Of a DNA stretch of 64,000 bases, positions 24,596 to 48,300 are shown piece by piece. Position numbers and translations under genes: made by a program. Below the pieces are notes generated by a model. That model had not been told where the DNA came from. It saw only the letters and a program-made list of their open reading frames with translations, and searched no databases. The first letter of the stretch is position 1. Each line of letters begins with the position of its first letter. Source of the DNA: Ylistrum balloti (lineage: Eukaryota); NCBI RefSeq assembly GCF_031769215.1, contig NW_026782152.1:434001-498000 (forward strand), written 5' to 3'.

Positions 24596-27500
24596 CTATA
24601 CAGGTGTACTTCGTCCTGACTCTGCTCCATTACCTGCAGCAGAAATTCATACGAACAAATTAGGTCAAATATATTTGCTGTCTCACATCTGCCATTAATA
24701 TAAATACATTTATATATTAGCAAATATATTAGATAAACTACTGTATGCACCAATTATATGAAGCATTGCTTTTTAAGAGTCATCCAGCCTACTTTCATTT
24801 CAAGAGCTTGATAAAAAGGCCTACTTTCATTTCAAGAGCTTGATAAAAAGGCCTACTTTCATTTCAAGAGCTTGATAAAAAGACCTACTTTTTTAGGAGT
24901 TTGATAAAAAGGATAAATTTTGAAAGCATATCTATAAATAATTTTATGTAGACTCTTCTATCTGCACCAATAGGTAGCAAACTGAAAATATTTTATTTTC
25001 TTTGTGTAAAACAAATCTATTAATTCATAACCTAATGATGATGCTCGATATTTCTGACACTTACCTATTTTGACTTTATCGATAGGTCCCCAAATTCGAA
25101 CAGTGCCATCATCTGAAGCACTCGCTATGATCCCAGGCACTTTGGGGTTCCAATGAACACAATTAACAGTTCTTGTATGACCTTCTAACACTGCTATAGG
25201 TACTTCTCTTCGTAAATGCCATATATATACTTTATGATCTGTAAAAAGATGAAACGCAGCATTTTAAGGTACATAGGAATGTAACTTCAGAGAGTAACAA
25301 GACGAGTAGTGCCAGCAATTAATTGTCCCCGCCTCCAAACAAACTGGTAAGTAACTGAAGTAAGAGTCATGCCTCCTTTTACAGCTGAATGTGTTACACA
25401 GTTAATACTTCATCCGGCACAAATTCTACCCTTCCAGATTTTTCTAAACATGATTTGGCAATTTTAGGTTGCTATAGGTTAAAAGATGCAATACAATTTA
25501 AAGAATTGTGAAAAATGCACATATTGGACAGTACTGTTGAAAAGGATGCAACACTTTACCATCCACATAGGTTCTTACTTATGTAACTAAATGATCAACT
25601 TTTGCAAATGTAGGTACACTATACAAGATATATCACTAGAAAAGTGACCAATGGACAACACATGGACTGTAACTCTATCACTTCTAAAGTGTCAATCCTG
25701 TGAAAGAGGTGTATAAATGCATGATCTGAGATGAGACATTCTCATACACAAAACTTTTTAATGAACTTGAAAATTTATTTATCATTTATAAAAACAAGTC
25801 TTAAAGAAATGATACACAGTGAACCAAGGTTGATAACTCTAGAAAGACAGAGACTGGAGATCTAATGTTGGTATGCAACCCTCCACTACAAAAGGTCCCA
25901 AATACAAAACTTTATAGTATTTGGCTACAAAATAGATGAAATATGCCACTGATAAAATGATTTGTTTACTAATCTGACTATATCATTGAACACTGATAGT
26001 CTCTATTACAGTTCTAGATAAGGAACTAACATTCTTAGTATTTTACAATTAGTGACCTTCAAAACACTTTTCCAATAATATGTTTAACTAAACTTTGATA
26101 TTTACATTTAAGTTGAAATGTTACTTCATTAATTTAGTTACCATGCAACAAAACATCAGTATTTTGTGCAACTTGTGTTCTTTGTGGTGCAAACTTATTA
26201 CCTTCACTTCCACTGGCAATAAAGTCCTGGTTGAGACCTCCAAAGCATGAGTGTATTGTGTAAAATCCTTGTGTAACGCCTTGAAATTTTCTAACTAAGC
26301 ACCTATCTTTTAAATCCCATAAATGTACTCCCTGAAATCGAAAAATTGTGTTTTAAACATAGAATCAATTAAACAGCATATATCATTCAAGTATAGATAT
26401 TTTTTAGATGTCTTTTTGTTTCACATAATGTGGAATGTCAACAATAACTATGGGTCATATATACCCCCAGATACAGGAATATCATCCCAGAGTAATGTGT
26501 TTCTATTATATGGATGCAGATCATGGCAACTCAGAAAGAAGTGTTATCCTACCAGTAATTCAATTTGTTCCATTGATTTGAATAGAACTCAACTTTTATC
26601 CATTAGATATATTACAAACTAACTCAAAGAGAAGTGGTATCCTACCATGAACGACTACCTTATCCATGAGACAAAACAAATTACCTGAGTCGCAACATTC
26701 AATAATGCTAATCTCCCGGTTTCATTTAGTGTGAAAGACATGACGGGATGATCCTCCTGAATTCTAAAACATAATGAGACCAGGTTTAGTATAAATAGGG
26801 ATCTTTTGTTATTCACATCATTCTCAACCATCACAATGTTCAAACTTCTAGAATAGATGTTTCAAATCATTTACACTAGATGCAATCTCGACTTCAGCTT
26901 TTATCATTGTGTAAGTCATTAATGTATCATTTTTAGTGTATTACATGATGCTATTTATTCAGACAGATCATAGGCCTTCTGTTGATAAACCACAGCCTTC
27001 TTTAACATTCTGAAAGTAAAAGACAAGGGAATGATAAATGTATACTGACATGTTGTAGTCTGTTAATTCATCAAAATTGTAGCCTCGTATTCTGTGGTGG
27101 GTGTCAGCTGCCAGGACACTCTTGCCATCATTTTGACAAGCCATACACTGGACCCTCACACCCTCCCAGGAGTCCAACATGTTCCCGTCAAGGTCCTATC
27201 ACACACAATATCACCAACATATTTGGAAATTGATAAATAATGTTTGATAATTAAGTATAATTTTGATTGAGGTACTTTTGCCACAAAACTGGAGTCTCTA
27301 TCTCTTCTTGGATTAAAAATGAACACCTATCATGTAAATTTTATCAAAGGCAAATGGAGAAGAACATAAAGTACTTCTTTTTTCATAGATTAAATTGTAA
27401 AATGTATACCTTCCTTCATCAAAAGATAAATCTGTCTACAAATTTCGGAGTCTATATAAAAAGGTGCGTGGTATTTCTTTGATATTTTCACTAGCCAAAC

Positions 27501-30500
27501 TCTTTCAATAATTGTGGTGAGAAATCAAAATATAGGTCAGTCACCTACTTTTCAAAAGTTTCAATTAACCATCAGAGGATGTTCTTGCATTCCAAACAAA
27601 ATATCAAATGGAAGGGGATACTTTGTTTCAAAGTTTGCAAAGAATGAGGTTAAAGAGTAAAACATTCTTAACAATCGCTAATTTTACAGACATTACATTC
27701 TATCATCATGAGATGGGACCTGCAGGTCTTATTTTATTCACCAAAATGAAAATGAGATGCAGGATATATTCCAAATGTTTACAAAGAAAAATGTCTAAGA
27801 TTAAAGCGTTCATGAAAGTACAATGAACACTACCATCCCAACATGTAATTACACAACAAGATTTGTGAAATGATAAAAAGAAATGCATCCATACATAGTC
27901 CTTTCTAATAATGTGCAAGCATATAAAATTTAGTATTCAAATAAATTTTGAACCTCTTCGTTAAAAAGCATAAGAACATCTTATGACCAGAACAAATGTT
28001 TCCAATTGGAAAGATCCACATTTGTGGTCCACAGCACTCCACCACACAAGATCTGCCTACGTATGAAACTGATATCTACCCCCTGATGAATTTGTCCAAA
28101 CACAGCAGATGAATTTGACTTACACATTGATAGAACTGTCCCCTGGTTCCTCCAGTAACAAACTTTTTGCCATCTGGTTGCCAGGCAGCTGTAGTTAAAC
28201 TATCCTCTGGAGACTGGCTCATTTTTACTCTCAAGTCCCCAGTCTATAATAAAGGAAGAGAAAATTCAGTACTTCCACAGGACACGATAAACAAACCCTC
28301 TCAGTGAGTTTCATCAATCTTTTTAAGAACTGATGACATAAATAATGTCTTCAAAACATATTTCCAGTTTCTGAAACACTATATTATAAAAGCTGAATCA
28401 GTAGGAATACTCTTAGGTATGTTTTTCCATATATAAACTTACATCATCTTCTTTGCTGAAAAATCCTTATGAGAAACGAACTTTTTCAGGAATAGATCAT
28501 TTATTAACTTTGTATCTTATCATTAAGTCACTTGAGTTATATGTTATAAACAGACTGTATAGCACTTTTGCTCATTGGTATCCATTATAATCATCAGTAC
28601 ATTAGTACAATAAAAAGACTATTTCAAAAATTATCATTATCATCATATATCTTCAATTGGAAATAACATTTAATTATTCTGGCTTATTCAATTTTAACCA
28701 CATTTTCTTTTAAATATTCTCTTTGGTTTTTGTTTAAACATATTTTTATTGTCATCAAACAACCGTGATTAGGCTCAAGTTATAACAACTTAGTGACGCC
28801 TTCTCTTTGGTTTGGCAATGTCAGAAGAAAAGAAGCTAATCGCTTCACTCTGTCCTTTTTCTGATTAAGGTAACAGTGTTGTTATCGAAACATCACACTT
28901 CAATCTTCTACTGTTTGTGTTATAAGCACTTCTTTTCTATTATACACAGCTTAATACCACAGTACCTCTGCATTCCACAGCCAGAGATCAGAACAGTCAT
29001 CTGGACCACATGCTATAATGTGTGTGCCATCAGGACTCCAGGCAATATATGACACTCCATAGGAATGACTATCTAGGCTCTTAACCCGTGTCAACTCATA
29101 GGTTGCCTAGAATAGGTTAAAAAATCTATATAAATCATAACTCATGTAATTATGTTTAACATGTTATAACAAAATCTATATTAATTTATTGTGTTCTTTG
29201 CCTAAGACAGGTCATCTTCAAATACATCTTCAATAAGTAAAATGTTAATGCATATAGAGAATTTTGTATGTGTTTCCATTCAAGTGAGATTTATGTAGGA
29301 TGACGACATGTATCTCGTGTAATAAAAAATTTAACAGGGAGTGCACGATTATCAAATTAAAATATTTGAATACTTTAAAATAAAATACTGATGACAAAAT
29401 TACCATGTCAAGTTCCCAGATGATTAGTGAGCCATCTTTAGATCCTGTAGCAAGCTTTGTACCATCAGGAGAAAAGCGGCAGAACCAAACTTCATCACAG
29501 TGTTCATTAAGAATCTGGATGGTGGTGGACGGGAACTGCTCTCTATAAATATTATCAATAAAATCCATTCAAATATCTTACAACAAAAAAAAAAACCATG
29601 CAATCTAAAATGGATCAGAACTAGAAAATACCTTCAAGATGTGAATGTCCCTACAAATGAATATCAGTGTATGACAAATTTTATAAAGAGTAAAAGTGAC
29701 CTTACTTTTGACCTGAAAATAGTGTAACCCTATAAAATGAAATCAGTATAGGTATTGTTGTAGTAAATTACAAAAGAAAAAATGATGTCAGACAGGACAC
29801 TAAATGATGGGTAAGGATTACATCACTTATGATAAATCTCTATAAAATGGTGAAAGCATAAACACATCTGTTTATATATCTGTCTTGTGTAAAACAAAAG
29901 GCATCTTGAATATGATAAGGTATGCAAAGAAATTTTCATTGCAGTTTAACTTTTGCCTGTTTTGCTCTTTGGCCAGAGTTTTGTTTAAGCTGAAATAAAG
30001 GATTGTTATGTATTTCAAGGGCAAATTTAACACTGGGACAAATGTTTGTCCTTGTATAGTGATAGGATGAATGCTTGGCCTTGTACAGTAATTATTTCAA
30101 ATTTCTTTTTTCACAGCAATGCTTTTGTTTGGGTGTTTCTACATACCTGCTACAGACATGGTCTATGAGAAGGGAGACAGCATCAAGGTTGCTGTCAAAT
30201 TTTGTGTTGTGATATGGACATTTGTCCTTCTGCATCTCAACAGCTTGATTAAGTAATGTTAGCAACCGACGAGGAGGAAGCATAACAGTTGGTGGCAAGA
30301 AAGCTGTAAAAACATCAAGGAGTAATTAAATGCTTAAATCTTCAGAAAATTTCAGAAAGGTACAATTTACAGTTTCATGACATTCTCTTCAAAACCTACA
30401 AATACAATTCAATGATTTCAGAGTATCAATCTACACTCTGTGGGATAACAGGATAACGTTGTAAATGAAGGATGCATATTTCTGATATCATGTTAGCGAT

Positions 30501-33500
30501 AGAAACAATTTATCAGAAAATACATCCCAGAAATCGCCAATGGTTAATGTACTCATTACTGTGACAATAAAAGACAAAAGCTCAAGAACCAATTTCATAA
30601 ATGGCAATGTTAAAAGATTTACCCATATTTTGCCATTGTTGGAGTTCAGATTAAAATCTGAAGATATTGACATTTTTCTTTACTGCTTTCCGATGGTAAG
30701 TTAAGTAATTCTGTTTATGTTTAGGGACCCTTGTAAAAACAGTTCTACAATAGTTTTCAGAGTGATTTCACAAATGACAAGAAACATAAACATTGACCGG
30801 CAAGAAAAATAAATTCTCTGACATCTAAGATTGTTATGGCAAAACAGTATAAAACTCTTGACAGTTATCTGATACATCATTTCCAATTAAATTCAAAGTT
30901 ACTGTTTTGTGTCATCAGGAAAAACTAACTTGGCTTAAATACACATACTGACTGACCATTAGATAAGGTACACTTTTAACCTGCACTGATACATACACTG
31001 AAGCTTTTCCACAAGTTTGGTCCGCGACTCTGTACCTCTCCCTTGCCACTCCGCTGTTTCTCGTAAATCTTCAGGGTTACAACACATCATGTACCTAAAA
31101 TAAAAAACATACAACTACAAATTAGTAAGATAATCAAATTATTTGTGAAATCTTCTATAGCCTAATCAATGTTCTTGGTTTTAAGAAGACAACAGATTAT
31201 TTTGTTTACACACCCTGACAATACGTGGACCCTTTCTGTGTTGAATTTAAGTGGAGTAAGCTCATGCCGTAGACAATGTAAAGCATCCATCTCCCTTCCA
31301 TCTTCCAACAGCTCCAGATACTTTTGTTCAAGTAAAAGGAACTTCATTTTCTATAAGTAGAAACATTGTTTGATAATCATACAATCATGTCAACGAGCTT
31401 CACTCAGTCTATATTACCATATGTACCATATTAGTTACATGTGATACAATTGTCATTGATTGAGCAAGAGATTCTCACATAACATGCTTATGTTATTGAT
31501 AAGTCAGCAGAAACATGCATCTTATAAACAAACCTTAATTTGTTAGCAATTTCATAACCAGATAATATATGAAATAATTGAAGACATGTTTTCCCTATCT
31601 GGATTATCACCATCCTTCTAACACTTACAGAAATCCCTTGTGGACTATCAATCAGAGTTTTGAGTTCTTCCAGGTTTAGTTCTGCCTGTAACAAAGACAT
31701 GGAAAATATATTAAACTCTTAAATTTTAAGCATACAACATGCCAACCACTTAAACATCTGTCATAATGTACTTGAACTGGTCACCTTGATGTTCTTTATT
31801 AAATTAGTTATAGTGATGTACTAGATGTCACAATGTACTGGTTACCATGATGTACTGGTTGTCATGATGTACTGGTTATCATGACATACAGGTTACTGTG
31901 ATATACCAGTTCATGTTCCCATTGTCACAATGTACTGGTTATTGTGACAGACCACTTCATAATTCAGTTGTCACAATGTACTGGTAATCCTGATTTACTG
32001 GTTGTCATGATATACAGGTAATGTATCAGTTCATGGTCCAAATTGTAATAATATCCTGGTTGTTGTGATGGACCACTTCATGGTTCTGTTGTCATGATGT
32101 TGTGATGTACAAGTCATCTTAACGTACTTTATGTAGTTATAATATAAGGTGAGTAACAGTTGTCATTATGTGTATTATCGTTATATACCAGTTGTTATTA
32201 ATACACTTGCTATCCTGGTGTTCCAGTTATAATATGCTGTACCAATTGTCAAGGTACTCTAAAATTAATGCACTGATTGTCATGATGTAATAAGTTATTG
32301 TGACAAACATCAATATGCCTATTGTCATGGTGTGTCAGTTATTAAAATGTGCACCTAATGCCAAGGTGTTTAAAAATCAATATTACTGGCACCATGATGA
32401 TCAATGAATCAATCATTAATTTGAATAACGTATTATTGAACATATTATCCTGTTATATCCTTTTCTATATTAGACAGTACTGCATACCTTCGCCCATTCT
32501 CCATTCATTACATGTGAACGAAGTTTGGCAGCAGCCGGATGCTCCAACATACATCCCGATTCAGAAATAAGTTGTTCAGCAGTTTGACTGAAAAGGCAAA
32601 CAGGATTTTTATATTTCAATCAAAAAATTGAAATGATAGAGTCTTCATTATCATTAGATCTATTTAAATATCCATACATTGATTACAAATCTAGAAGTTG
32701 AAAAAAACCAAATGTATCTGTAATATATGTAACGGCAAATGTGCCATTTTACTACATTATATCCTTTGGATGCAATCACTGAATTGATATGCTATTTTCA
32801 TATTGAAATTAAGCAAATCTAATTATAAACTTAGATGTCATAATATATTGCCAATACCATAGCATGACTAATAATTTCAAACACTATCATTTTTCTTTAA
32901 TTAAATTAACTTTTATGTAATCATGTATTTTTTATTCAGTCAAGGTATGTATATAAATATATTCAAAACCAAAAACATATCCAACAATAACGGTATCTTT
33001 GATGATCAACAGGTGATATTTTTCACTTAATCATCAAGTAAGATGTAATGCCTCTATCCACGCATGACATTCACTAATGTACACAAAGAAATCAGCTGAT
33101 CCATCAACACTTTTTTTTTGTTTACATCCCTAATTCCTCATCAGAATTTTCGATTCGCCATGGAATAATTTAATTTCAAAACACTTCAACGCGGTTTTAA
33201 GCAGACTGGCATTCTGATTTTGTAGCAATATTCTGCATATCCTGTTTAGGCCGTTAGTAAACAAAGCAATTTAGACAGACGGCTTTTACGCAGCCGTCTA
33301 AATACTGAACAGCTCCTTACTTTAAACCAAGTCCTCTCAAATGCTGTACAATCAATCGGACGATATCTTGGTCAGTTTGTGACATTGATTTGGGAGGTAC
33401 AGGTTTATCTAATTCCCCGTTTGTGAGAGAGGAACACGTTCCATTTTGCTGGGAAGTTGTTGCTATCTCAGTCGCTCCATTGTGCTGGGGGCAGCCATTA

Positions 33501-33508
33501 GCCTGCAT
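24596..33508 (-). CDS. WDR26: WD repeat-containing protein 26 (CTLH/GID E3 ligase subunit, Gid7 homolog), 567 aa from the first in-frame AUG, complete
   Basis: 14 coding exons (minus): 33508-33321, 32587-32488, 31685-31629, 31350-31214, 31094-30997, 30303-30147, 29542-29404, 29106-28966, 28243-28124, 27195-27050, 26763-26685, 26331-26202, 25238-25065, 24633-24596. 1704 nt, all GT-AG, in frame. LisH/CTLH region ([20 protein letters not shown]...[12 protein letters not shown]) and WD40 repeats ([23 protein letters not shown]; [13 protein letters not shown]...[11 protein letters not shown]). Confidence 0.98.
24788..24912. repeat. 32-bp tandem repeat, about 3.9 copies, last WDR26 intron
   Basis: cctactttcatttcaagagcttgataaaaagg at 24788, 24820, 24852, and degenerate at 24884. 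Confidence 0.95.
28842..28940 (+). ncRNA. Degenerate hammerhead-ribozyme-like motif, copy A (antisense in WDR26 intron 8; probable Penelope-like/retrozyme relic)
   Basis: CTGATTA-A-[GGTAACA gtgt TGTTATC]-GAAA-CATC at 28861-28894. About 100 bp is homologous to 59498-59597. Core G8 is mutated to T. Confidence 0.5.
31820..32350. repeat. Degenerate ~17-bp minisatellite in WDR26 intron 2
   Basis: Many variants of tgtactggttgtcatga (e.g. 31850-31885, 31930-32030). Confidence 0.75.
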
Positions 33509-33586
33509 GTTAGTGGCAGAAAATCGCTGCTTTTTCCGCGGTGGGGGCGAAACTCCACCGTCTTCTGAACCTGACGAGGATGCCAG
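33509..33586 (-). CDS. WDR26: Predicted CUG-initiated 26-aa N-terminal extension of WDR26
   Basis: In frame with the AUG at 33508 and open back to a TAA at 33607-33605, with no AUG. CTG at 33586-33584 has context gacATACTGG (A at -3, G at +4). Encodes (M)ASSSGSEDGGVSPPPRKKQRFSATN. Confidence 0.7.
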
Positions 33587-33635
33587 TATGTCTCGAATGA
33601 GTTCTTATGTGAATATTGTTGATTAAACCCATGCA

Positions 33636-33718
33636 AAATGGCCCACGACTGATCAAAACATAGGTCCTCTCTCACTTCACTTCGACGGTGACCAAATTTG
33701 TTTTGCTTGATGACGTCA
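33636..33718. promoter_or_regulatory. WDR26 core promoter motifs: full CRE palindrome and YY1-like site
   Basis: TGACGTCA at 33711-33718; aaaatggc at 33636-33643; CpG-enriched segment just upstream of exon 1. Confidence 0.5.
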
Positions 33719-34489
33719 CGGATTTGTGAATGATGGGAAATTTTTCTAATTTCGGCAACCCGGGAAATATAACTTGTTGCACAGTTGTCATAAATTTTAA
33801 CAAGAATCAATATTTCATCACAGACTTACAAATTCTCACATTTTATAAACTTCATCCCGAAGTAAATCATTTTGCTATGGTTTTGGTATAAAGACAACAC
33901 AGTCTGTGATATGGTCTCTTACATGTATGTAAAACTACGTGTACCAGGATGTACCATAAAGTCAAAATGCTTGTTAATATTTTGTTTCCGCCTGAATTAT
34001 TAAATTTTCCTATTCAGTTTTCCTTACAAATTCTTGAATATTGCAGACACAGAGGCCATGTGGGATGTATATGCAACGTTATTGAATTACGGGCCTAAAA
34101 TTTTATAATCCTTTTACTGAATAACATTTGATTTTCCTCGATCGCCTGTATGATGTAATTTCTGAATTCATCAGTATTCTGACTAACTATCAGAGATTCA
34201 ATTTTCGTCTTGGTCGATCTACGACCATGACAAAAATATGGAATTGCAGATAGACAGAATATTTGTCATAACCATTAGAAGTATGTTTGACTCAAACTAT
34301 ATCTAGTTTTTGTATTGAATGGAATCGCGAATTCGCCTGTGTTTGGTACGATCTTTAAATATGAGTCGCTTCATGCTTAATAAATAACGATTACACTATA
34401 CAAGTGTAAGTTAAATGGATGTACTTTACGCATGTTTTCAAAACCTTATAAAATCTAACTACAATAGTTATCCACTTTTTTTTTCATTT

Positions 34490-42300: not shown

Positions 42301-45300
42301 CTTGAATTGTACAACTGTAATGTAAACAGCATATAATCCATAATAAAGGCCTAATTAAAAGGCTTTAACTGCCACCTGAGTTTAATGTTTTAGTTCTTGT
42401 GCCATGTCAAAAATTGATTTTTTCGGATTTTCAGAAATTTTGACAACACACTGGGGAATCAGTCAGATTCAACATGCACAAACCGTCAAAGTACAATCGT
42501 ACACTTACAATTCTAACCAAGACTAAATTATTTTCCCAAAAAAGAACTAAGTTATAAAAGAATACACTACAGTAAACTTTGCCCCTAACTGAGGACAAAT
42601 AAATGTGAGATCCTGGGTAATTCTTGTAAAGCTTCTGAAACCCTTTCATCCATGAAAATTACATAAACTAGTATGTATTGGTTTCTACTGTATCCATTTT
42701 TGCCATATCCATCTGCTAGAGTCAATGTGTGCATCCATGAGAGTCAGGCGACCTAAAAAGCTTATAAGCTTACATTACAAATACAAAATGTTTTTTAGAA
42801 TAGGAAAGGTAGGCACTTACTTCTATTTTACTAAGGCGTAATGGTGTCCTCTGCTGAATGATCTCTAAACCATTTAGGCCCTCTCCTAAGGCTGGATTGT
42901 AGCTAGTGAAAACAAACTTTCCCTCATTTTCCTTCCTTGTGTATTTGTTGTCCTTTGAGCGGTCACAGCCATCACTATTACAGCTGTCATCTAGTTTGGT
43001 AATACTGTCAGTAAACTCCCTTAGCTGTCGGTCATTCACTACCCCACCATCATTGGTCTCCCTGGCAACATTTTTATAATTATAAACTGTTGTGAAGGAA
43101 TTCCTTCTTTCCTGAGACTGACACATTAATATCATATTTGATAAAATGACATTCATCATTTAACCTTTGATTAAAATTATCAAGAGTTTCCCCTACCACC
43201 AACTGACCTGTGCTATGTCCCCTGTACCCAATGACATCCATATGTAACTGTCCCAAACACTCAGTATTGTAACAAGATAATTCAGCAAAATGCAGTCTCC
43301 CACCAACACCACTTCACCAAGAAAAACCCATATCCCATGATTAGATTTGAAGAAGATAAGGCCAGTACAAGTTTTTTATGTAGATCAAAGGTCAAAATGT
43401 AGGTCAGTGACCTACTTTTAATATGTGACACACAGTTCCCTTCATCAGTATTGTAGATGATAGGAAACTGACAAGGAAAAGCTTTTCCTTTGATGTTCAC
43501 TAAGATGAACCAATTGTGTGTTGAAGAATGGGGACAATGTAGTGGAAGGATCGACAAACAAATGCAAAACTATAGTCCCCTCCTGTTCCTGGTGGAGGAC
43601 TCATCTTATAATAATCCCATGGGGTCAATAATTAAATTTTGACTCAAAGTCAGGGGTGGGCCTATTACATGAGAGTGCAAAAATTATTTATCTTTTTATT
43701 GAACAGCTTGGGTGGGCTCGTTACTGGGCCTAGGCTTATTGCCAGATAAATGTGGTAGCATACCATGTGTCCCACCACCAGTGTTCCTTGCCTGGTAGTT
43801 CTGTGTAGTTGATCATGAGCTGTATCTCATTCATTAGTCTGTACATCCTCCTCATGAAGAATGGATGAACAGTGCGATCATTGGCACCAATTCTGGTGAA
43901 TACAGGAATGTTCTGAATAAGAATGAATATCCATGTTACTACAGAATACTTATTCAGGTAATTAAACATTTATGCCATATAACAAATATAAATGAATGAA
44001 ATATTTAGTTGTGAGCAAAAATTGCAAAACTAATTTAATTATTTTTTTCAATTGTGCTACATACTCTCAAAAATATATGAATTTATATCCCATTGGTGAA
44101 ACGTAACTGCTTTTTTTGAAAAAAAACACAGCATCCTCTTCTTATTAATATAAAATTTTGACCAAGCTACCTGTAAATTTGTGATATGTCTATCAGCATC
44201 ATTCTCTGCTATACAGGCCTCCATCACTGCTTTGATGGCAGGATCAATGTGACTTGTGGCCAGATCATGTCTGTAGAAGAATTACTTAGGTATCATTTCA
44301 CAAATTTTGAAAAACTGGCATCTATAAAATGTCTAATTTAATAAATAGTTTAATATAATAGATAAAATCATTTTAAAATAGCTTAGATATTTGATCAGAT
44401 CTGAAGACTCATTTCAAATGATATTCCAAGTACCTAAATATGTTAAGAGAACTATGAATAAGTATGATTCATTAGTTTTCATTCCAAAACAAACCTAAAG
44501 AAAAGATTGCTGTCTCCATACTCTTCTTTCTTGATCCACCCTGCGAGTGATACCAATCCAATGGCTCTGTCAGGGAAGTGTGTGGCTAGGTGCCACGCCC
44601 CATGTCCTCCCATGGAGTGACCTGAATGTGAAATGTATACATGTAAACATACCCAATACAGCTACATGTATCTTGTCAGGCCTGTACTGTTTGATCAGCG
44701 ATTGATAGAATGGTGCCATACCTATACAGTAATCAAAACACAAACTCTTCAAATCTTTACACGATTCTCAAGTAATTTTCAAAGGTGAAAATAATTGTAG
44801 TTACTTGCCAGCAAACAGGACACTGGAACTGTCTGCCTTTTCAGAGATCCAATCACTGGATTGTGTTAGTGATGCCAGTCTGTCCAGTGCTGTCATAGCC
44901 GTGAGACTGCCAGGACCTTCCCAGTTATGTGCACCATGTCTGTTAGCAACCATTTACACATTGTTATCCAGTCAAGATGTTTTTATTTGATATAACAACT
45001 ATTGCTTGTTTAATCAAAATAAGTTTAATAGATCTGATCTTTAAATCAGATGCAACATTTCATTATTTCCCGCTTTATTCACATTAAGCAATTGTTTGTT
45101 TTTGTTTTTGCATATAAAACGTATTGGTTTTGAAAACAAAAGATGTAATACCACAATTTCTGATAGACATATATACCTTGTTGGAGCCAGCAGCCAAGCA
45201 CGTGGAATTCCAAATACAAATTCTCCATTCCTCATTACCTTGTAGCTGTCAGCCTGGTTCTGTGGTGGCACAGTGGTGCCATGTAATGTGAGAAGGGTAG

Positions 45301-48300
45301 GACAGGTGGCTCCCCCACACCCTATAATAGGGGCTATGGCTGCCGCATGCTGCACAGATCCATCATGGTCTAGAAATGTAAACAGAAAGGACTCTCCAAG
45401 CTTCCTACAGCGGAGATTGAACTTGAAGGGCAAGGTTCCTTGTGATGTTGTAATGGACAGAATCACATTTATTGAGGTACACTTTGACACAACTCTCTCA
45501 TCAGCTACTGTTTCCAATGATATCAAAACTGGTATAGTTTGACCTGGAGCAATATTCACAGAATGGAGCAAATGGCTTTTCAAAGTGTTTCCATCTGATT
45601 GATCAGCCACTGATACCTTGGAAATGCGAACCCATTTTGTTTGATGATAATTTGTCACTGGAAGAGCAATGTGTTTGCCAAACAAGTAGCCATTTACAAG
45701 ATCTGGTAAGAAGTGAGGAGGTAGAATTTGGATACTAGATTGTGGTATCTTTATAGAGCACTGGAAATTAGCAGTCACTTTAGAGCGTAAACGAATGTAG
45801 ATGGTATGGACACCTTGTGACAGGTGGGTAGTGGTCCAGAACACATCCCTACGGTACACATCTCCTGTCAATGGTCGGTCATCGATGTAAAAAGTGTGGA
45901 CATCCAAACACTGAAACACCACAATCTGGTCTTTCTCATTCACGGCAAACTCCCCTACCACCCAACCCTGCCATTCAGTTATCCCCATGGAACTAAGAGA
46001 GTTTACCAAGTCATTCCAGTTTACTTGGGGACTTATTTTTATGGTTTCATCAGCATAAGACTGCTTAAATGTTTTCCACTTAACTTCTCCACTGTGAACC
46101 AGCTCAGAGAAAAATTTTATATTTTTGTTGTTTCTTTTTTTAGCAACTTCAAACACACCACCAAAAGGTTCCAATGGATCACCATCAATTTCCATTTTTC
46201 CAATGACAAATGGTCCAATAAAATCCCATGAAGCAACGTACGGGCTAACCTTCCCAGATAGTTTTGATGCATGCTTGAAACAAGATACCGCTTGTGATGT
46301 TTGTCCCTTCCTCTGGTACAGTGTACCGAGTGCAGACCACTGAAATCCATCATTTTCCTTGGCTTCCAAGGCGAGAAGTACACATGGTATTGCCTGGTCA
46401 ATCTATAGTAAACATAGAAATTGGTAAAGATATATCAGTACATACAACTGATTCTTTGAAGTTTACATTAGTAACTAATTTTGGAAGGGTTCATATTTTT
46501 TAAGGATAGTAAATTGAATGGTCAATCAAAAGAAGCCATTATGAAGACAAAGGAGCTGTACTGAGATGATACAATATTAACTCTTCAATAAAATGACCAG
46601 GATTCAACTCTTCTGAAAAGGTATTGGGTCATCTCACCTGCCACTCTACATTGGTGTTTTCCAGTTTCCTTCAAAATTTTATCTCCAACATCAGTAATTA
46701 TTTTGCCCTGTATTAAAGCTGGAAAAAGGCTGGTTCCCCTTGGCCCGAGTAATAATTGCAAGTTGTTTAAACTTGTTATTCATAACTGTTTATTAATAGA
46801 TCTGTGCACTAAAAATTTCAATGTTTCTTAGTCATGAGATTGATAGGATCTGTTTACTACAGAGTTTGTCAATAAACAGTCATTTTCACGAATCCTACTG
46901 TCCTTTTTCTTTGTTTATCACTTGTATCAATACTGATGATACCAAGATATCTAATACCAAATAATTTCACAGAGCTATTGTTTTCTATTTGTCCCAATTG
47001 CAGTTAGTTTACTTGGAGTAAATTTCACACTACTCTGTCATTTTTTAATATTAGTGAAATAAGTAAAGTATGTCTTGATAGTGATATACAGGCACAAAAG
47101 GGTATAAGTGACATTTTCTGAGATTTTGATGGTTATTTAATTTTTTTTATATATTATAAGAGGAGTTCATATTCAATAAGACATAAAACATCTTAACAGT
47201 TCAAAATTGATATATAAAAACAACCTTTAAAACCTTCCTATTTTCAGCTGCTTCATCCTTTTATGTTTAAGGATTACCGGTAAATTTCTAGTTTGTATAC
47301 ATTTTAGGGAATAAATACATTTGAATTTGGGTAAATTGAATAACTGACAAATCCAGTTATGCAAAATTTAACCAAGTTCAGCTGAAGTTATCACCCAATA
47401 ACCTCAACAAAAAAAGAAAGTTAATCTTTACATTTACAGTTTTTCTTCATTAAAATACAATTTTATTACCCATTATAAAGTTTAATCACAAACGATGACA
47501 ATGTTCAGATTTCCAGCTTGTCCAACAGGACAAACTGTAATAACAAGAGGATAAGTTAATGATCTGAGATGCTATATACTTCACCTCTGCAGTCCATCTT
47601 AAATGGTTTACACTGTTCAGTGTTATCTTTTTTGGACATGGAGCTGTAAATTTCCTCTTTTCTTTTTCCAAAAATTCTTTAACATCCTAAAAAAGTAAAG
47701 AAAAATGTGAGAAATTTAAGATTTGTATAGTATCCTTTACATGACCATCTATTTTCAATACTACAATACATGATTTGGGTCAAAACTTTTTTAAAATGTG
47801 AAATGGTGTGACCATGTTTAAATCACACTAAAAAGTAAGGACATAAATAATAACTTCCTTAACTGTAAGTCACTATACAGTAATCACTCTCAGGTATGTT
47901 CAGTATCCAGCATTCTTGTTGGACATTCTTGTTGGACATTCTTGTTCCTGTCAGGATCATGGCACAATGAATTAAAATATACTTAAGTAAAACTATTCAG
48001 ATGTATAACATCATGATTCTATTTTAATTCTTAATTGTCATTCATCAAAGTTACTTGTCATCATAAAGTAAATTTGTCATAATCATAATTTCCTTTGCTA
48101 TATATGTCAGGATGATACATGAGTATGGTAGAAGTTGAGAGTACTGGTTGCCTTACTAGCCATGGCTAGTGAAATTTTCCCTTATGTCAAGCAGTAGAGT
48201 GTCTGACTAGAGACCGAAGGTTCAAACCCCAACAATGGCAGGGTATTTTTCATTACTTCTTCCTATTACAGATTTGGTACTGTAACCACTCCAAGGGTAG

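Follow-up and report, generated by a model that had tools for sequence, protein, structure and literature searches.

Exon 1 of the WDR26 orthologue carried on the minus strand of this stretch of Ylistrum balloti DNA (contig NW_026782152.1, positions 434,001 to 498,000; the whole stretch of 64,000 nucleotides is called here the window) raises the question of where translation of the gene starts. Within the CTLH/GID E3 ligase, WDR26 serves as a core subunit, both as substrate receptor and as scaffold. Besides the AUG that opens the annotated type of protein, the exon contains, 78 nt upstream and in the same frame, a CUG from which a product longer by 26 residues would be made. The segment between both codons evolves as protein-coding sequence, and the CUG and its context are conserved as nucleotides. 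On the favoured reading, which we consider quite probable, exon 1 of this mollusc gene encodes two proteoforms, one CUG-started and the other AUG-started, from a single leader.

When the reverse complement of positions 33607 to 33300 is read, an in-frame TAA (33607-33605) is followed by 32 codons, ELIRDILASSSGSEDGGVSPPPRKKQRFSATN, with neither a stop nor an in-frame ATG, as far as the ATG at 33508-33506, which opens MQANGC... and whose Met is invariant across all aligned sequences. The open frame of the window carries no weight taken alone, because none of the three minus-strand frames has a stop over 33510-33600. The elements of the proposed extension are these:

33605-33607, minus strand: in-frame TAA stop, 6 codons 5' of the CUG and within the mRNA.
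33584-33586, minus strand: proposed CUG initiation codon, GAC ATA CUG G(CA), with G at -6, C at -4, A at -3 and G at +4.
33509-33583, minus strand: the remaining 25 codons of the extension, ASSSGSEDGGVSPPPRKKQRFSATN, with coding-type conservation (3-periodic substitutions, the ratio pN/pS of non-synonymous to synonymous differences, and frame-0 stops in 0 of 10 sequences).
33554-33583, minus strand: Ser/acid-rich segment ASSSGSEDGG with a CK2-like S-x-x-D/E pattern, conserved as ASS(S/G)(E/D)S(E/D)DGG.
33524-33547, minus strand: PPPRKKQR, a basic core resembling a nuclear localisation signal (NLS) and fitting K-K/R-x-K/R; P-P-x-K-K-x-R is invariant in both alignments (A1 and A2).
33506-33508, minus strand: annotated-type main AUG (AAC AUG C, A at -3), an invariant Met in the alignments.

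The coding signature of the extension was analyzed by comparing genomic DNA of nine relatives (L001-L009), a fish (L010, Aldrovandia) and a metagenome scaffold (L011), which together with the window gave 12 sequences. In the ungapped comparison anchored at the CTG, mean pairwise amino acid identity is 0.05-0.29 from codon -12 to codon -2, and takes the values 1.0, 0.82, 1.0 and 0.65 from the CTG onwards; the boundary of conservation thus coincides exactly with the CTG codon. Pairwise nucleotide differences at the first, second and third codon positions are 0.23, 0.16 and 0.51 in the extension, as compared with 0.61, 0.69 and 0.69 in the 66 nt upstream, and the variable columns at the three positions of the extension number 9, 10 and 19 of 22 (p = 0.002). 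Over all pairs pN/pS is 0.49 in the extension versus 0.41 in annotated exon 1, pN being equal in both. Between CTG and ATG no stop occurs in frame 0 in any of 10 sequences, while the other two frames are interrupted in 3 and 7 of them, and each of the invariant columns for Ser, Pro, Lys and Arg draws on 2-4 synonymous codons. Purifying selection at the protein level, an in-frame open sequence without AUG and a location of the codon within the mature mRNA, which are among the criteria of Ivanov 2011 (PMC3105428), are all found at this locus. A conserved RNA hairpin after the CUG, which could enhance initiation, was considered and rejected, RNAalifold giving -4.4 kcal/mol for 11 sequences and no covariation.

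The start codon itself is kept to an extent not seen in other leucine positions. The homologous codon is CTG in 11 of the 12 sequences (the window and L001-L009, 10 of 10, and Aldrovandia, where the genomic context is ACT CTG GCC) and GTG in the remaining one, L011, at positions 443-445 (TGA GTC GTG GCC, with a stop two codons 5'), which adds another near-cognate codon to this position. The 'M' of cluster P0080 was considered as an AUG substitution and rejected, being the reading of a GTG start by a gene caller. A purine occupies position -3 in all 12 sequences, with A in the 11 CTG cases, and G is found at +4 in 12 of 12; among the 11 CTG sequences A or C occurs at -4 without exception, and G at -6 in nine. 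As a control, the three further columns of exon 1 with an invariant Leu show 4-6 different codons each, with CTG in 0, 2 and 1 of 10 sequences, and CTG makes up 8.6% of all other Leu codons in the compared set. A complete motif analysis showed that G at +4 raises initiation at CUG about 10-fold, that a purine at -3 helps, A being best, and that C or A at -4 is better than G (PMC5778536); the context across the 11 sequences fits these requirements. The site is hence a conserved near-cognate codon in good context located at the 5' edge of the conserved segment. In none of 10 sequences is there an in-frame ATG upstream of the main AUG, and the interval between CTG and main ATG is free of ATG in any frame in 10 of 10, as leaky scanning from the CUG to the AUG requires.

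The extent of the mRNA was established by mapping reads of two raw-read RNA-seq runs, together with a spliced 3-kb RNA contig (X1), on positions 32300-34300. Both runs cover exon 2 (32487-32586) and the region from 33324 to about 33715, with zero depth in intron 1 and above about 33720, and X1 joins exon 2 to exon 1 and proceeds unbroken to 33718. No splice joints or loose ends were found in the leader among the mapped RNA reads. The 5' end of the mRNA is thus located near 33718, 132 nt 5' of the CUG, with the leader unspliced. Since RNA covers the leader to about 33718, both the CUG and the in-frame TAA lie within the mature mRNA. A transcription start downstream of the CUG had been suspected from a uniform word share of 0.62 in the candidate RNA runs and was rejected, as the RNA reaches about 33718; the value is explained by seven single nucleotide polymorphisms further downstream in exon 1, all of them outside 33509-33586. 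The RNA of organisms A and D is identical to the window over the 78-nt extension and differs from it at seven sites in the remaining 188 nt of exon 1. Three features belong to this leader:

33711-33722, minus strand: 5' end of the mRNA (about 33710-33720) in the conserved CCGTGACGTCA block, a palindrome resembling the cyclic AMP response element; X1 ends at 33718 and read depth is about 0 above 33707-33720.
33653-33661, minus strand: mini upstream open reading frame (uORF), AUG UUU UGA, in weak context (CCU AUG U) within the transcribed leader.
33510-33632, minus strand: 40-codon uORF in the +1 frame (UGC AUG G), which runs across the CUG and the entire extension to its UAA at 33512-33510, 1 nt before the main AUG.

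The RNA 5' end sits within the conserved TGACGTCA block. The larger block CCGTGACGTCA(T/C)CAAGCAAAA(C/T)AAA occurs at 33690-33722 (minus strand) of the window, at 1559-1592 of L001 and in part at about 222-250 of the TARA scaffold L004, and is probably the core promoter or initiator of WDR26 in these animals. Both AUGs of the leader (33661 and 33632) are out of frame, lie 5' of the CUG and have a pyrimidine at -3. The upstream ATG at -46 from the CTG is common to the window and its closest relative, L001, and is missing from more distant species. In these two animals the upstream AUGs could reduce or control the fraction of ribosomes reaching the CUG, and the 40-codon uORF could carry ribosomes past it to free them at the main AUG.

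A sequence-only reading of this DNA had described the leader as open for 32 codons with no AUG, which holds for the frame of the protein and fails for the other frames, where the two AUGs 5' of the CUG are found. The same reading placed a CUG at 33586 in an A-3/G+4 context, as is seen on the minus strand (ATA CTG G), and named a transcription start downstream of 33586 as one result that would speak against it; the unspliced leader with its 5' end at about 33718 is the opposite of that result.

The distribution of the extension among animals was studied at the protein level. A database search with the 94-residue translation of extension plus exon 1 gave 25 proteins, 19 of which align across the extension, including fragments named WDR26 from the leafhopper Homalodisca and a protein of the cockroach Diploptera. 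The aligned proteins share the block (S/I)-L-A-S-S-(S/G)-(E/D)-S-(E/D)-D-G-G-x-x-P-P-P-R-K-K-x-R, followed a few residues on by M-Q-..-N-G-C, and the similarity of the relatives stops abruptly just 5' of the Leu of the block. A profile from the CTG to the end of exon 1 (A2) was then compared with 1.84 billion cluster representatives, with 189 clusters matching at E <= 1e-3, from which 165 sequences were analyzed. The full module, LASS(S/G)ES(E/D)DGG..PPPRKK.R, is found in at least 73 of the 165 clusters, among them named sequences from Hemiptera, a cockroach, an amphipod and a teleost; 11 others have the basic part only, about 11 seem to be without the module, and 67, being open reading frames called from AUG or truncated, are uninformative on this point. 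Eight clusters (P0078/84/89/90/96/110/112/134) are of vertebrate type and read TLASASSSSDSDTGGASPPPRKK.RAS, followed by about 45-60 residues and then by MQANG...KKKKRLSQ.EEDVIRLIGQHL; one of their representatives comes from a named teleost, Aldrovandia affinis, whose genome contains ACC ACG GCC eight codons 5' of the CTG, which fits the 'ACG/CUG' start of Ivanov 2011 (PMC3105428). The crustacean group, with the amphipod Trinorchestia, reads IDTLASWEDPHYGGVSPPPRKK. The IDTLASWEDP group was considered to be dipteran, and so to correspond to the AUU extension of Ivanov, and this was rejected because its named member is an amphipod; no flies were identified among the profile matches.

The vertebrate-type clusters and the Aldrovandia DNA thus have a module in common with the window, at the same place relative to the CTG. 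As it occurs in Lophotrochozoa (the window), Ecdysozoa and Deuterostomia, the module supports an origin by the bilaterian ancestor, and the sequence comparisons argue for homology of start codon and module across Bilateria since then. The sequence-only reading had proposed such an age, and the lophotrochozoan, insect, amphipod and fish modules speak for it. The same reading had expected conservation of the motif in frame. This was found in 11 other sequences, where the codons vary at synonymous wobble positions, and in at least 73 protein clusters. The reading had also compared the motif with an S-rich...GASPPPRKKPR segment of human WDR26, a likeness that is borne out in kind by the vertebrate-type matches, the teleost (ACT CTG GCC) among them. 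It had further described PPRKKQR as an NLS-like motif preceded by an SP site; the basic core proved invariant in both alignments, and the SP site did not prove universal, insects having A-P-P-P.

The gene models of Homalodisca (L002, GCA_019364655.1) and Aldrovandia (L010, GCA_029706075.1) splice a small upstream ATG exon onto the extension, MDAQ...KPIRT in the former and MTDR in the latter. These grafted exons are unconserved and displace the genomic in-frame sequence, and look like an annotation rescue of the non-AUG start. The expectation that AUG-based annotation would miss the extension agrees with both models and their artificial AUG exons.

A mechanism for the production of both proteoforms may be proposed. 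Ribosomes would scan from the cap near 33718 and leak past the two out-of-frame AUGs in weak context; some of them would initiate at CUG 33586 and the rest at AUG 33508, each codon having A at -3. The CUG product would add 26 residues composed of the Ser/acid-rich stretch, GG and (S/A)PPP-R-K-K-x-R, and the predicted tryptic peptide of the extension is ASSSGSEDGGVSPPPR. We infer that initiation at the CUG by leaky scanning very probably takes place. The function of the added peptide is a separate matter. P-P-x-K-K-x-R fits the core consensus of a classical monopartite NLS. The core of the 73 clusters is KKxR in 52, KRxR in 17 and KKxK in 4, with KKQR in the window. This K-(K/R)-x-(K/R) core has a proline-rich flank and belongs to a region outside the solved structures, and it is the only basic cluster of its kind in the recognisable WDR26 coding sequence of the window. 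That the basic core acts as a classical monopartite NLS, whose activity phosphorylation of the adjoining Ser/acid cluster might modulate, and that the choice of start codon would set in this way the nuclear share of the CTLH E3 subunit, is a tentative proposal derived from the motif, to which we give not quite even confidence. The assignment of a CK2-like kinase to the Ser/acid segment would follow from its residue pattern only. The extension is expected to be disordered and is absent from all WDR26 chains of the PDB.

Several observations weigh against this scenario, either as a whole or in its parts. The leader contains two out-of-frame AUGs, and the 40-codon uORF lying over the CUG could divert many ribosomes. 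Published direct evidence of initiation or product (Ribo-seq, proteomics, western blot) comes from human only, and the NLS function is read from the match to the consensus alone, the SP site being absent in insects, as mentioned. Synonymous sites are somewhat more conserved in the extension than in the rest of exon 1 (pS 0.62 versus 0.79), so some constraint at the RNA level may add to the conservation, GAC GGT GGA being nearly fixed within the extension. As to the material, the raw RNA reads are labelled as organism D and the 100% DNA match as organism E, both being more than 95% identical here, and most relatives are metagenome or Logan contigs, the independence and taxonomy of which are only partly known.

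Among the other readings, the one that survives best accepts that the extension is translated from the CUG and differs on the role of the basic motif, which would chiefly be a self-binding pseudo-substrate or a docking site for a partner instead of an NLS. In the former case the motif would fill the basic-motif pocket of the WDR26 propeller, which binds the GRKRKW degron of NMNAT1 and is blocked by YPEL5; in the latter it would recruit another factor, and in either case the choice of start codon would tune the activity of the E3 receptor. Human WDR26 does recognise a basic motif inside NMNAT1 which is at the same time an NLS, and the authors of that work speculate on NLS capture (PMC7616709). 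The core of the extension is likewise basic and in most cases has a hydrophobic residue after it (L/V/I/F in 46 of 73 clusters), and the adjoining acidic, Ser-rich stretch could regulate the motif. A self-interaction of this kind would have been missed, because the solved structures are without the extension and the constructs of PMC7616709 used the AUG form. However, the argument is one of resemblance only: the RKRKW of NMNAT1 has an aromatic residue that is missing from most extensions, and the motif of the extension fits a simple NLS consensus equally well. We regard this reading as unlikely. Its most specific version, in which the module docks in the propeller pocket of WDR26 itself (possibly acting as an NLS too) and the choice between CUG and AUG would constitute a bilaterian-wide switch on CTLH receptor activity, tuned by the uORF in the window species, is offered as a conjecture of decidedly low probability.

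Initiation at another nearby near-cognate codon, such as the AUA just 5' of the CUG, has very little probability. ATA precedes CTG in the window, L001 and L006, and vertebrates have an extra ACG 8 codons upstream, which was considered by Ivanov 2011 (PMC3105428); nevertheless the codon at -1 is AGC, AGT or ACT in the other eight sequences, the CTG/GTG codon is the only conserved one, and between TAA and CTG the window contains no in-frame ACG or other conserved near-cognate codon.

The extension could also be coding and yet be reached from the AUG of an unannotated upstream exon or by an alternative upstream promoter, as the gene models of Homalodisca (P0013), Aldrovandia (P0078) and Trinorchestia (P0088) have it. 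In the window, the RNA runs continuous and unspliced to about 33718 with the in-frame TAA at 33607 inside it, and without joints in the leader it leaves no upstream coding exon spliced on. In-frame stops occur 2 codons 5' of the start codon in L001 and in L011, 4 codons 5' in L006 and 6 in the window; moreover, conservation ends exactly at the CTG with no acceptor-like polypyrimidine tract before it, and the grafted exons differ among species. This origin is scarcely credible here.

Least probable of all is a non-coding role of the conserved stretch, as a regulatory element of the 5' untranslated region (an RNA structure, a protein-binding site or a uORF-related element) with a frame open by chance: the three open frames of the window, the slightly reduced synonymous divergence, the nearly fixed GACGGTGGA core and the uORF that overlaps the stretch in the window and L001 would agree with it, but the 3-base periodicity, the residues kept through 2-4 synonymous codons per invariant column, the frame-specific absence of stops across species, the lack of conserved RNA structure (-4.4 kcal/mol, covariation about 0) and a uORF unconserved beyond the closest relative do not.

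The rest of the gene supports its identification as a WDR26/Gid7 orthologue and consists of the following parts:

33321-33505, minus strand: rest of exon 1 to the start of LisH, ending in AA/C, which is Asn once spliced; the joint 33321/32587 is present in RNA.
33320-33319, minus strand: GT donor of exon 1, which ends at 33321.
32487-32587, minus strand: exon 2, seen in RNA depth, joint and open reading frame.
24958-32290, minus strand: remaining WDR26 exons (CTLH/CRA, WD40 propeller), recognisable as exon open reading frames.

The LisH start at the end of exon 1 is thus followed by CTLH/CRA and WD40 exons, as corresponds to this subunit. The DIVRLI.QHL..LGL of exon 1 aligns with proteins named WDR26 and with a PDB chain of WDR26, a match made by the exon-1 profile only, and the Pfam LisH_TPL match to exon 1 alone is weak (E 0.078). 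The junction of exons 1 and 2 (33321/32587) is of phase 2 and gives a spliced protein ...GLGLNQT..., similar to vertebrate WDR26; the terminal Lys of the open reading frame lists arises because the reading runs into intron 1, the spliced codon being Asn. Beside the junction, a synonymous TTA-to-TTG change is present in the RNA-source organisms A and D. Elsewhere in the window, 45044-46369 (minus strand) holds an open reading frame of 442 amino acids which is no orphan: proteins of Mytilus, Lingula, Candidula, Elysia, Branchiostoma, Patiria and Amphiura match it strongly (E 1e-155 to 1e-80), and several of these have alpha/beta-hydrolase Pfam matches. The best named relatives of a long open reading frame neighbouring WDR26 come from Mytilus, Lingula and gastropods, in favour of a lophotrochozoan, most likely a bivalve.

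The vertebrate non-AUG extension of WDR26 has been known since 2011, but functional and structural studies have passed it over, their constructs and PDB chains beginning at the AUG. The mollusc case would be an orthologous addition to it, the new element being the homology of start codon and module across Bilateria to which the comparisons point. As molluscs, insects, crustaceans and fish have the CUG, its Kozak context and a module of 21 residues in common, this start would count among the few non-AUG starts conserved as a codon across Bilateria, which conflicts with an independent origin of the non-vertebrate WDR26 extensions in a compared set that is without flies. The comparison also singles out a compact motif, the Ser/acid cluster plus PPPRKKxR, as functionally important, and AUG-only annotation either drops the segment or invents upstream exons to arrive at it.

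The arrangement found in WDR26 may be compared with that of other systems. The CUG forms of FGF2 are the textbook case of a longer non-AUG form that carries an NLS. The CUG-started form of WDR26 similarly has a basic motif that is missing from the AUG form, and the choice of start could set localisation; the motif differs in being a short K-K-x-R core instead of Arg-rich repeats, and in WDR26 the likeness is known from sequence alone. The basic degron/NLS of NMNAT1 (PMC7616709) shares with the extension a short basic cluster, a dual NLS-like character and the same E3 system. In NMNAT1, however, the motif belongs to the substrate and has a Trp, whereas in WDR26 it would be part of the optional N-terminus of the receptor itself and its interaction is hypothetical. 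The non-AUG starts of EIF4G2 and TEAD1 and the upstream region of HELZ2 (PMC11317171) resemble the WDR26 case in that a near-cognate start in strong context has long been kept, while the extension, which purifying selection maintains, is overlooked or misrepresented by AUG annotation; WDR26 is not among the cases of that work or of its supplements. The upstream region of HELZ2 is conserved in bilaterians and its proposed GTG start only among monkeys (PMC11317171), while in WDR26 conservation extends to the start triplet (11 CTG, 1 GTG), over protostomes and a fish.

The closest system is vertebrate WDR26, for which an N-terminal extension starting at ACG/CUG was published together with two western-blot bands (Ivanov 2011, PMC3105428) and a peptide of the human extension was identified by mass spectrometry (PMC5834625). 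Conservation was described within vertebrates and the AUU extension of flies was judged independent (PMC3105428); in the searchable literature neither the extension nor its module is reported for animals other than vertebrates and flies. In vertebrates the extension is longer by a factor of about 3, with a linker of about 45-60 residues between module and MQANG, and has the extra upstream ACG candidate with 8 conserved codons, whereas the mollusc extension, of 26 codons, is a minimal form that would start at the CUG only. Both share the gene, the module placed right after a CTG in A-3/G+4 context, which in vertebrates reads LAS(A)SSS.D.D.GG(A/V)SPPPRKK.R, and the logic of a long and a short form obtained by leaky scanning.
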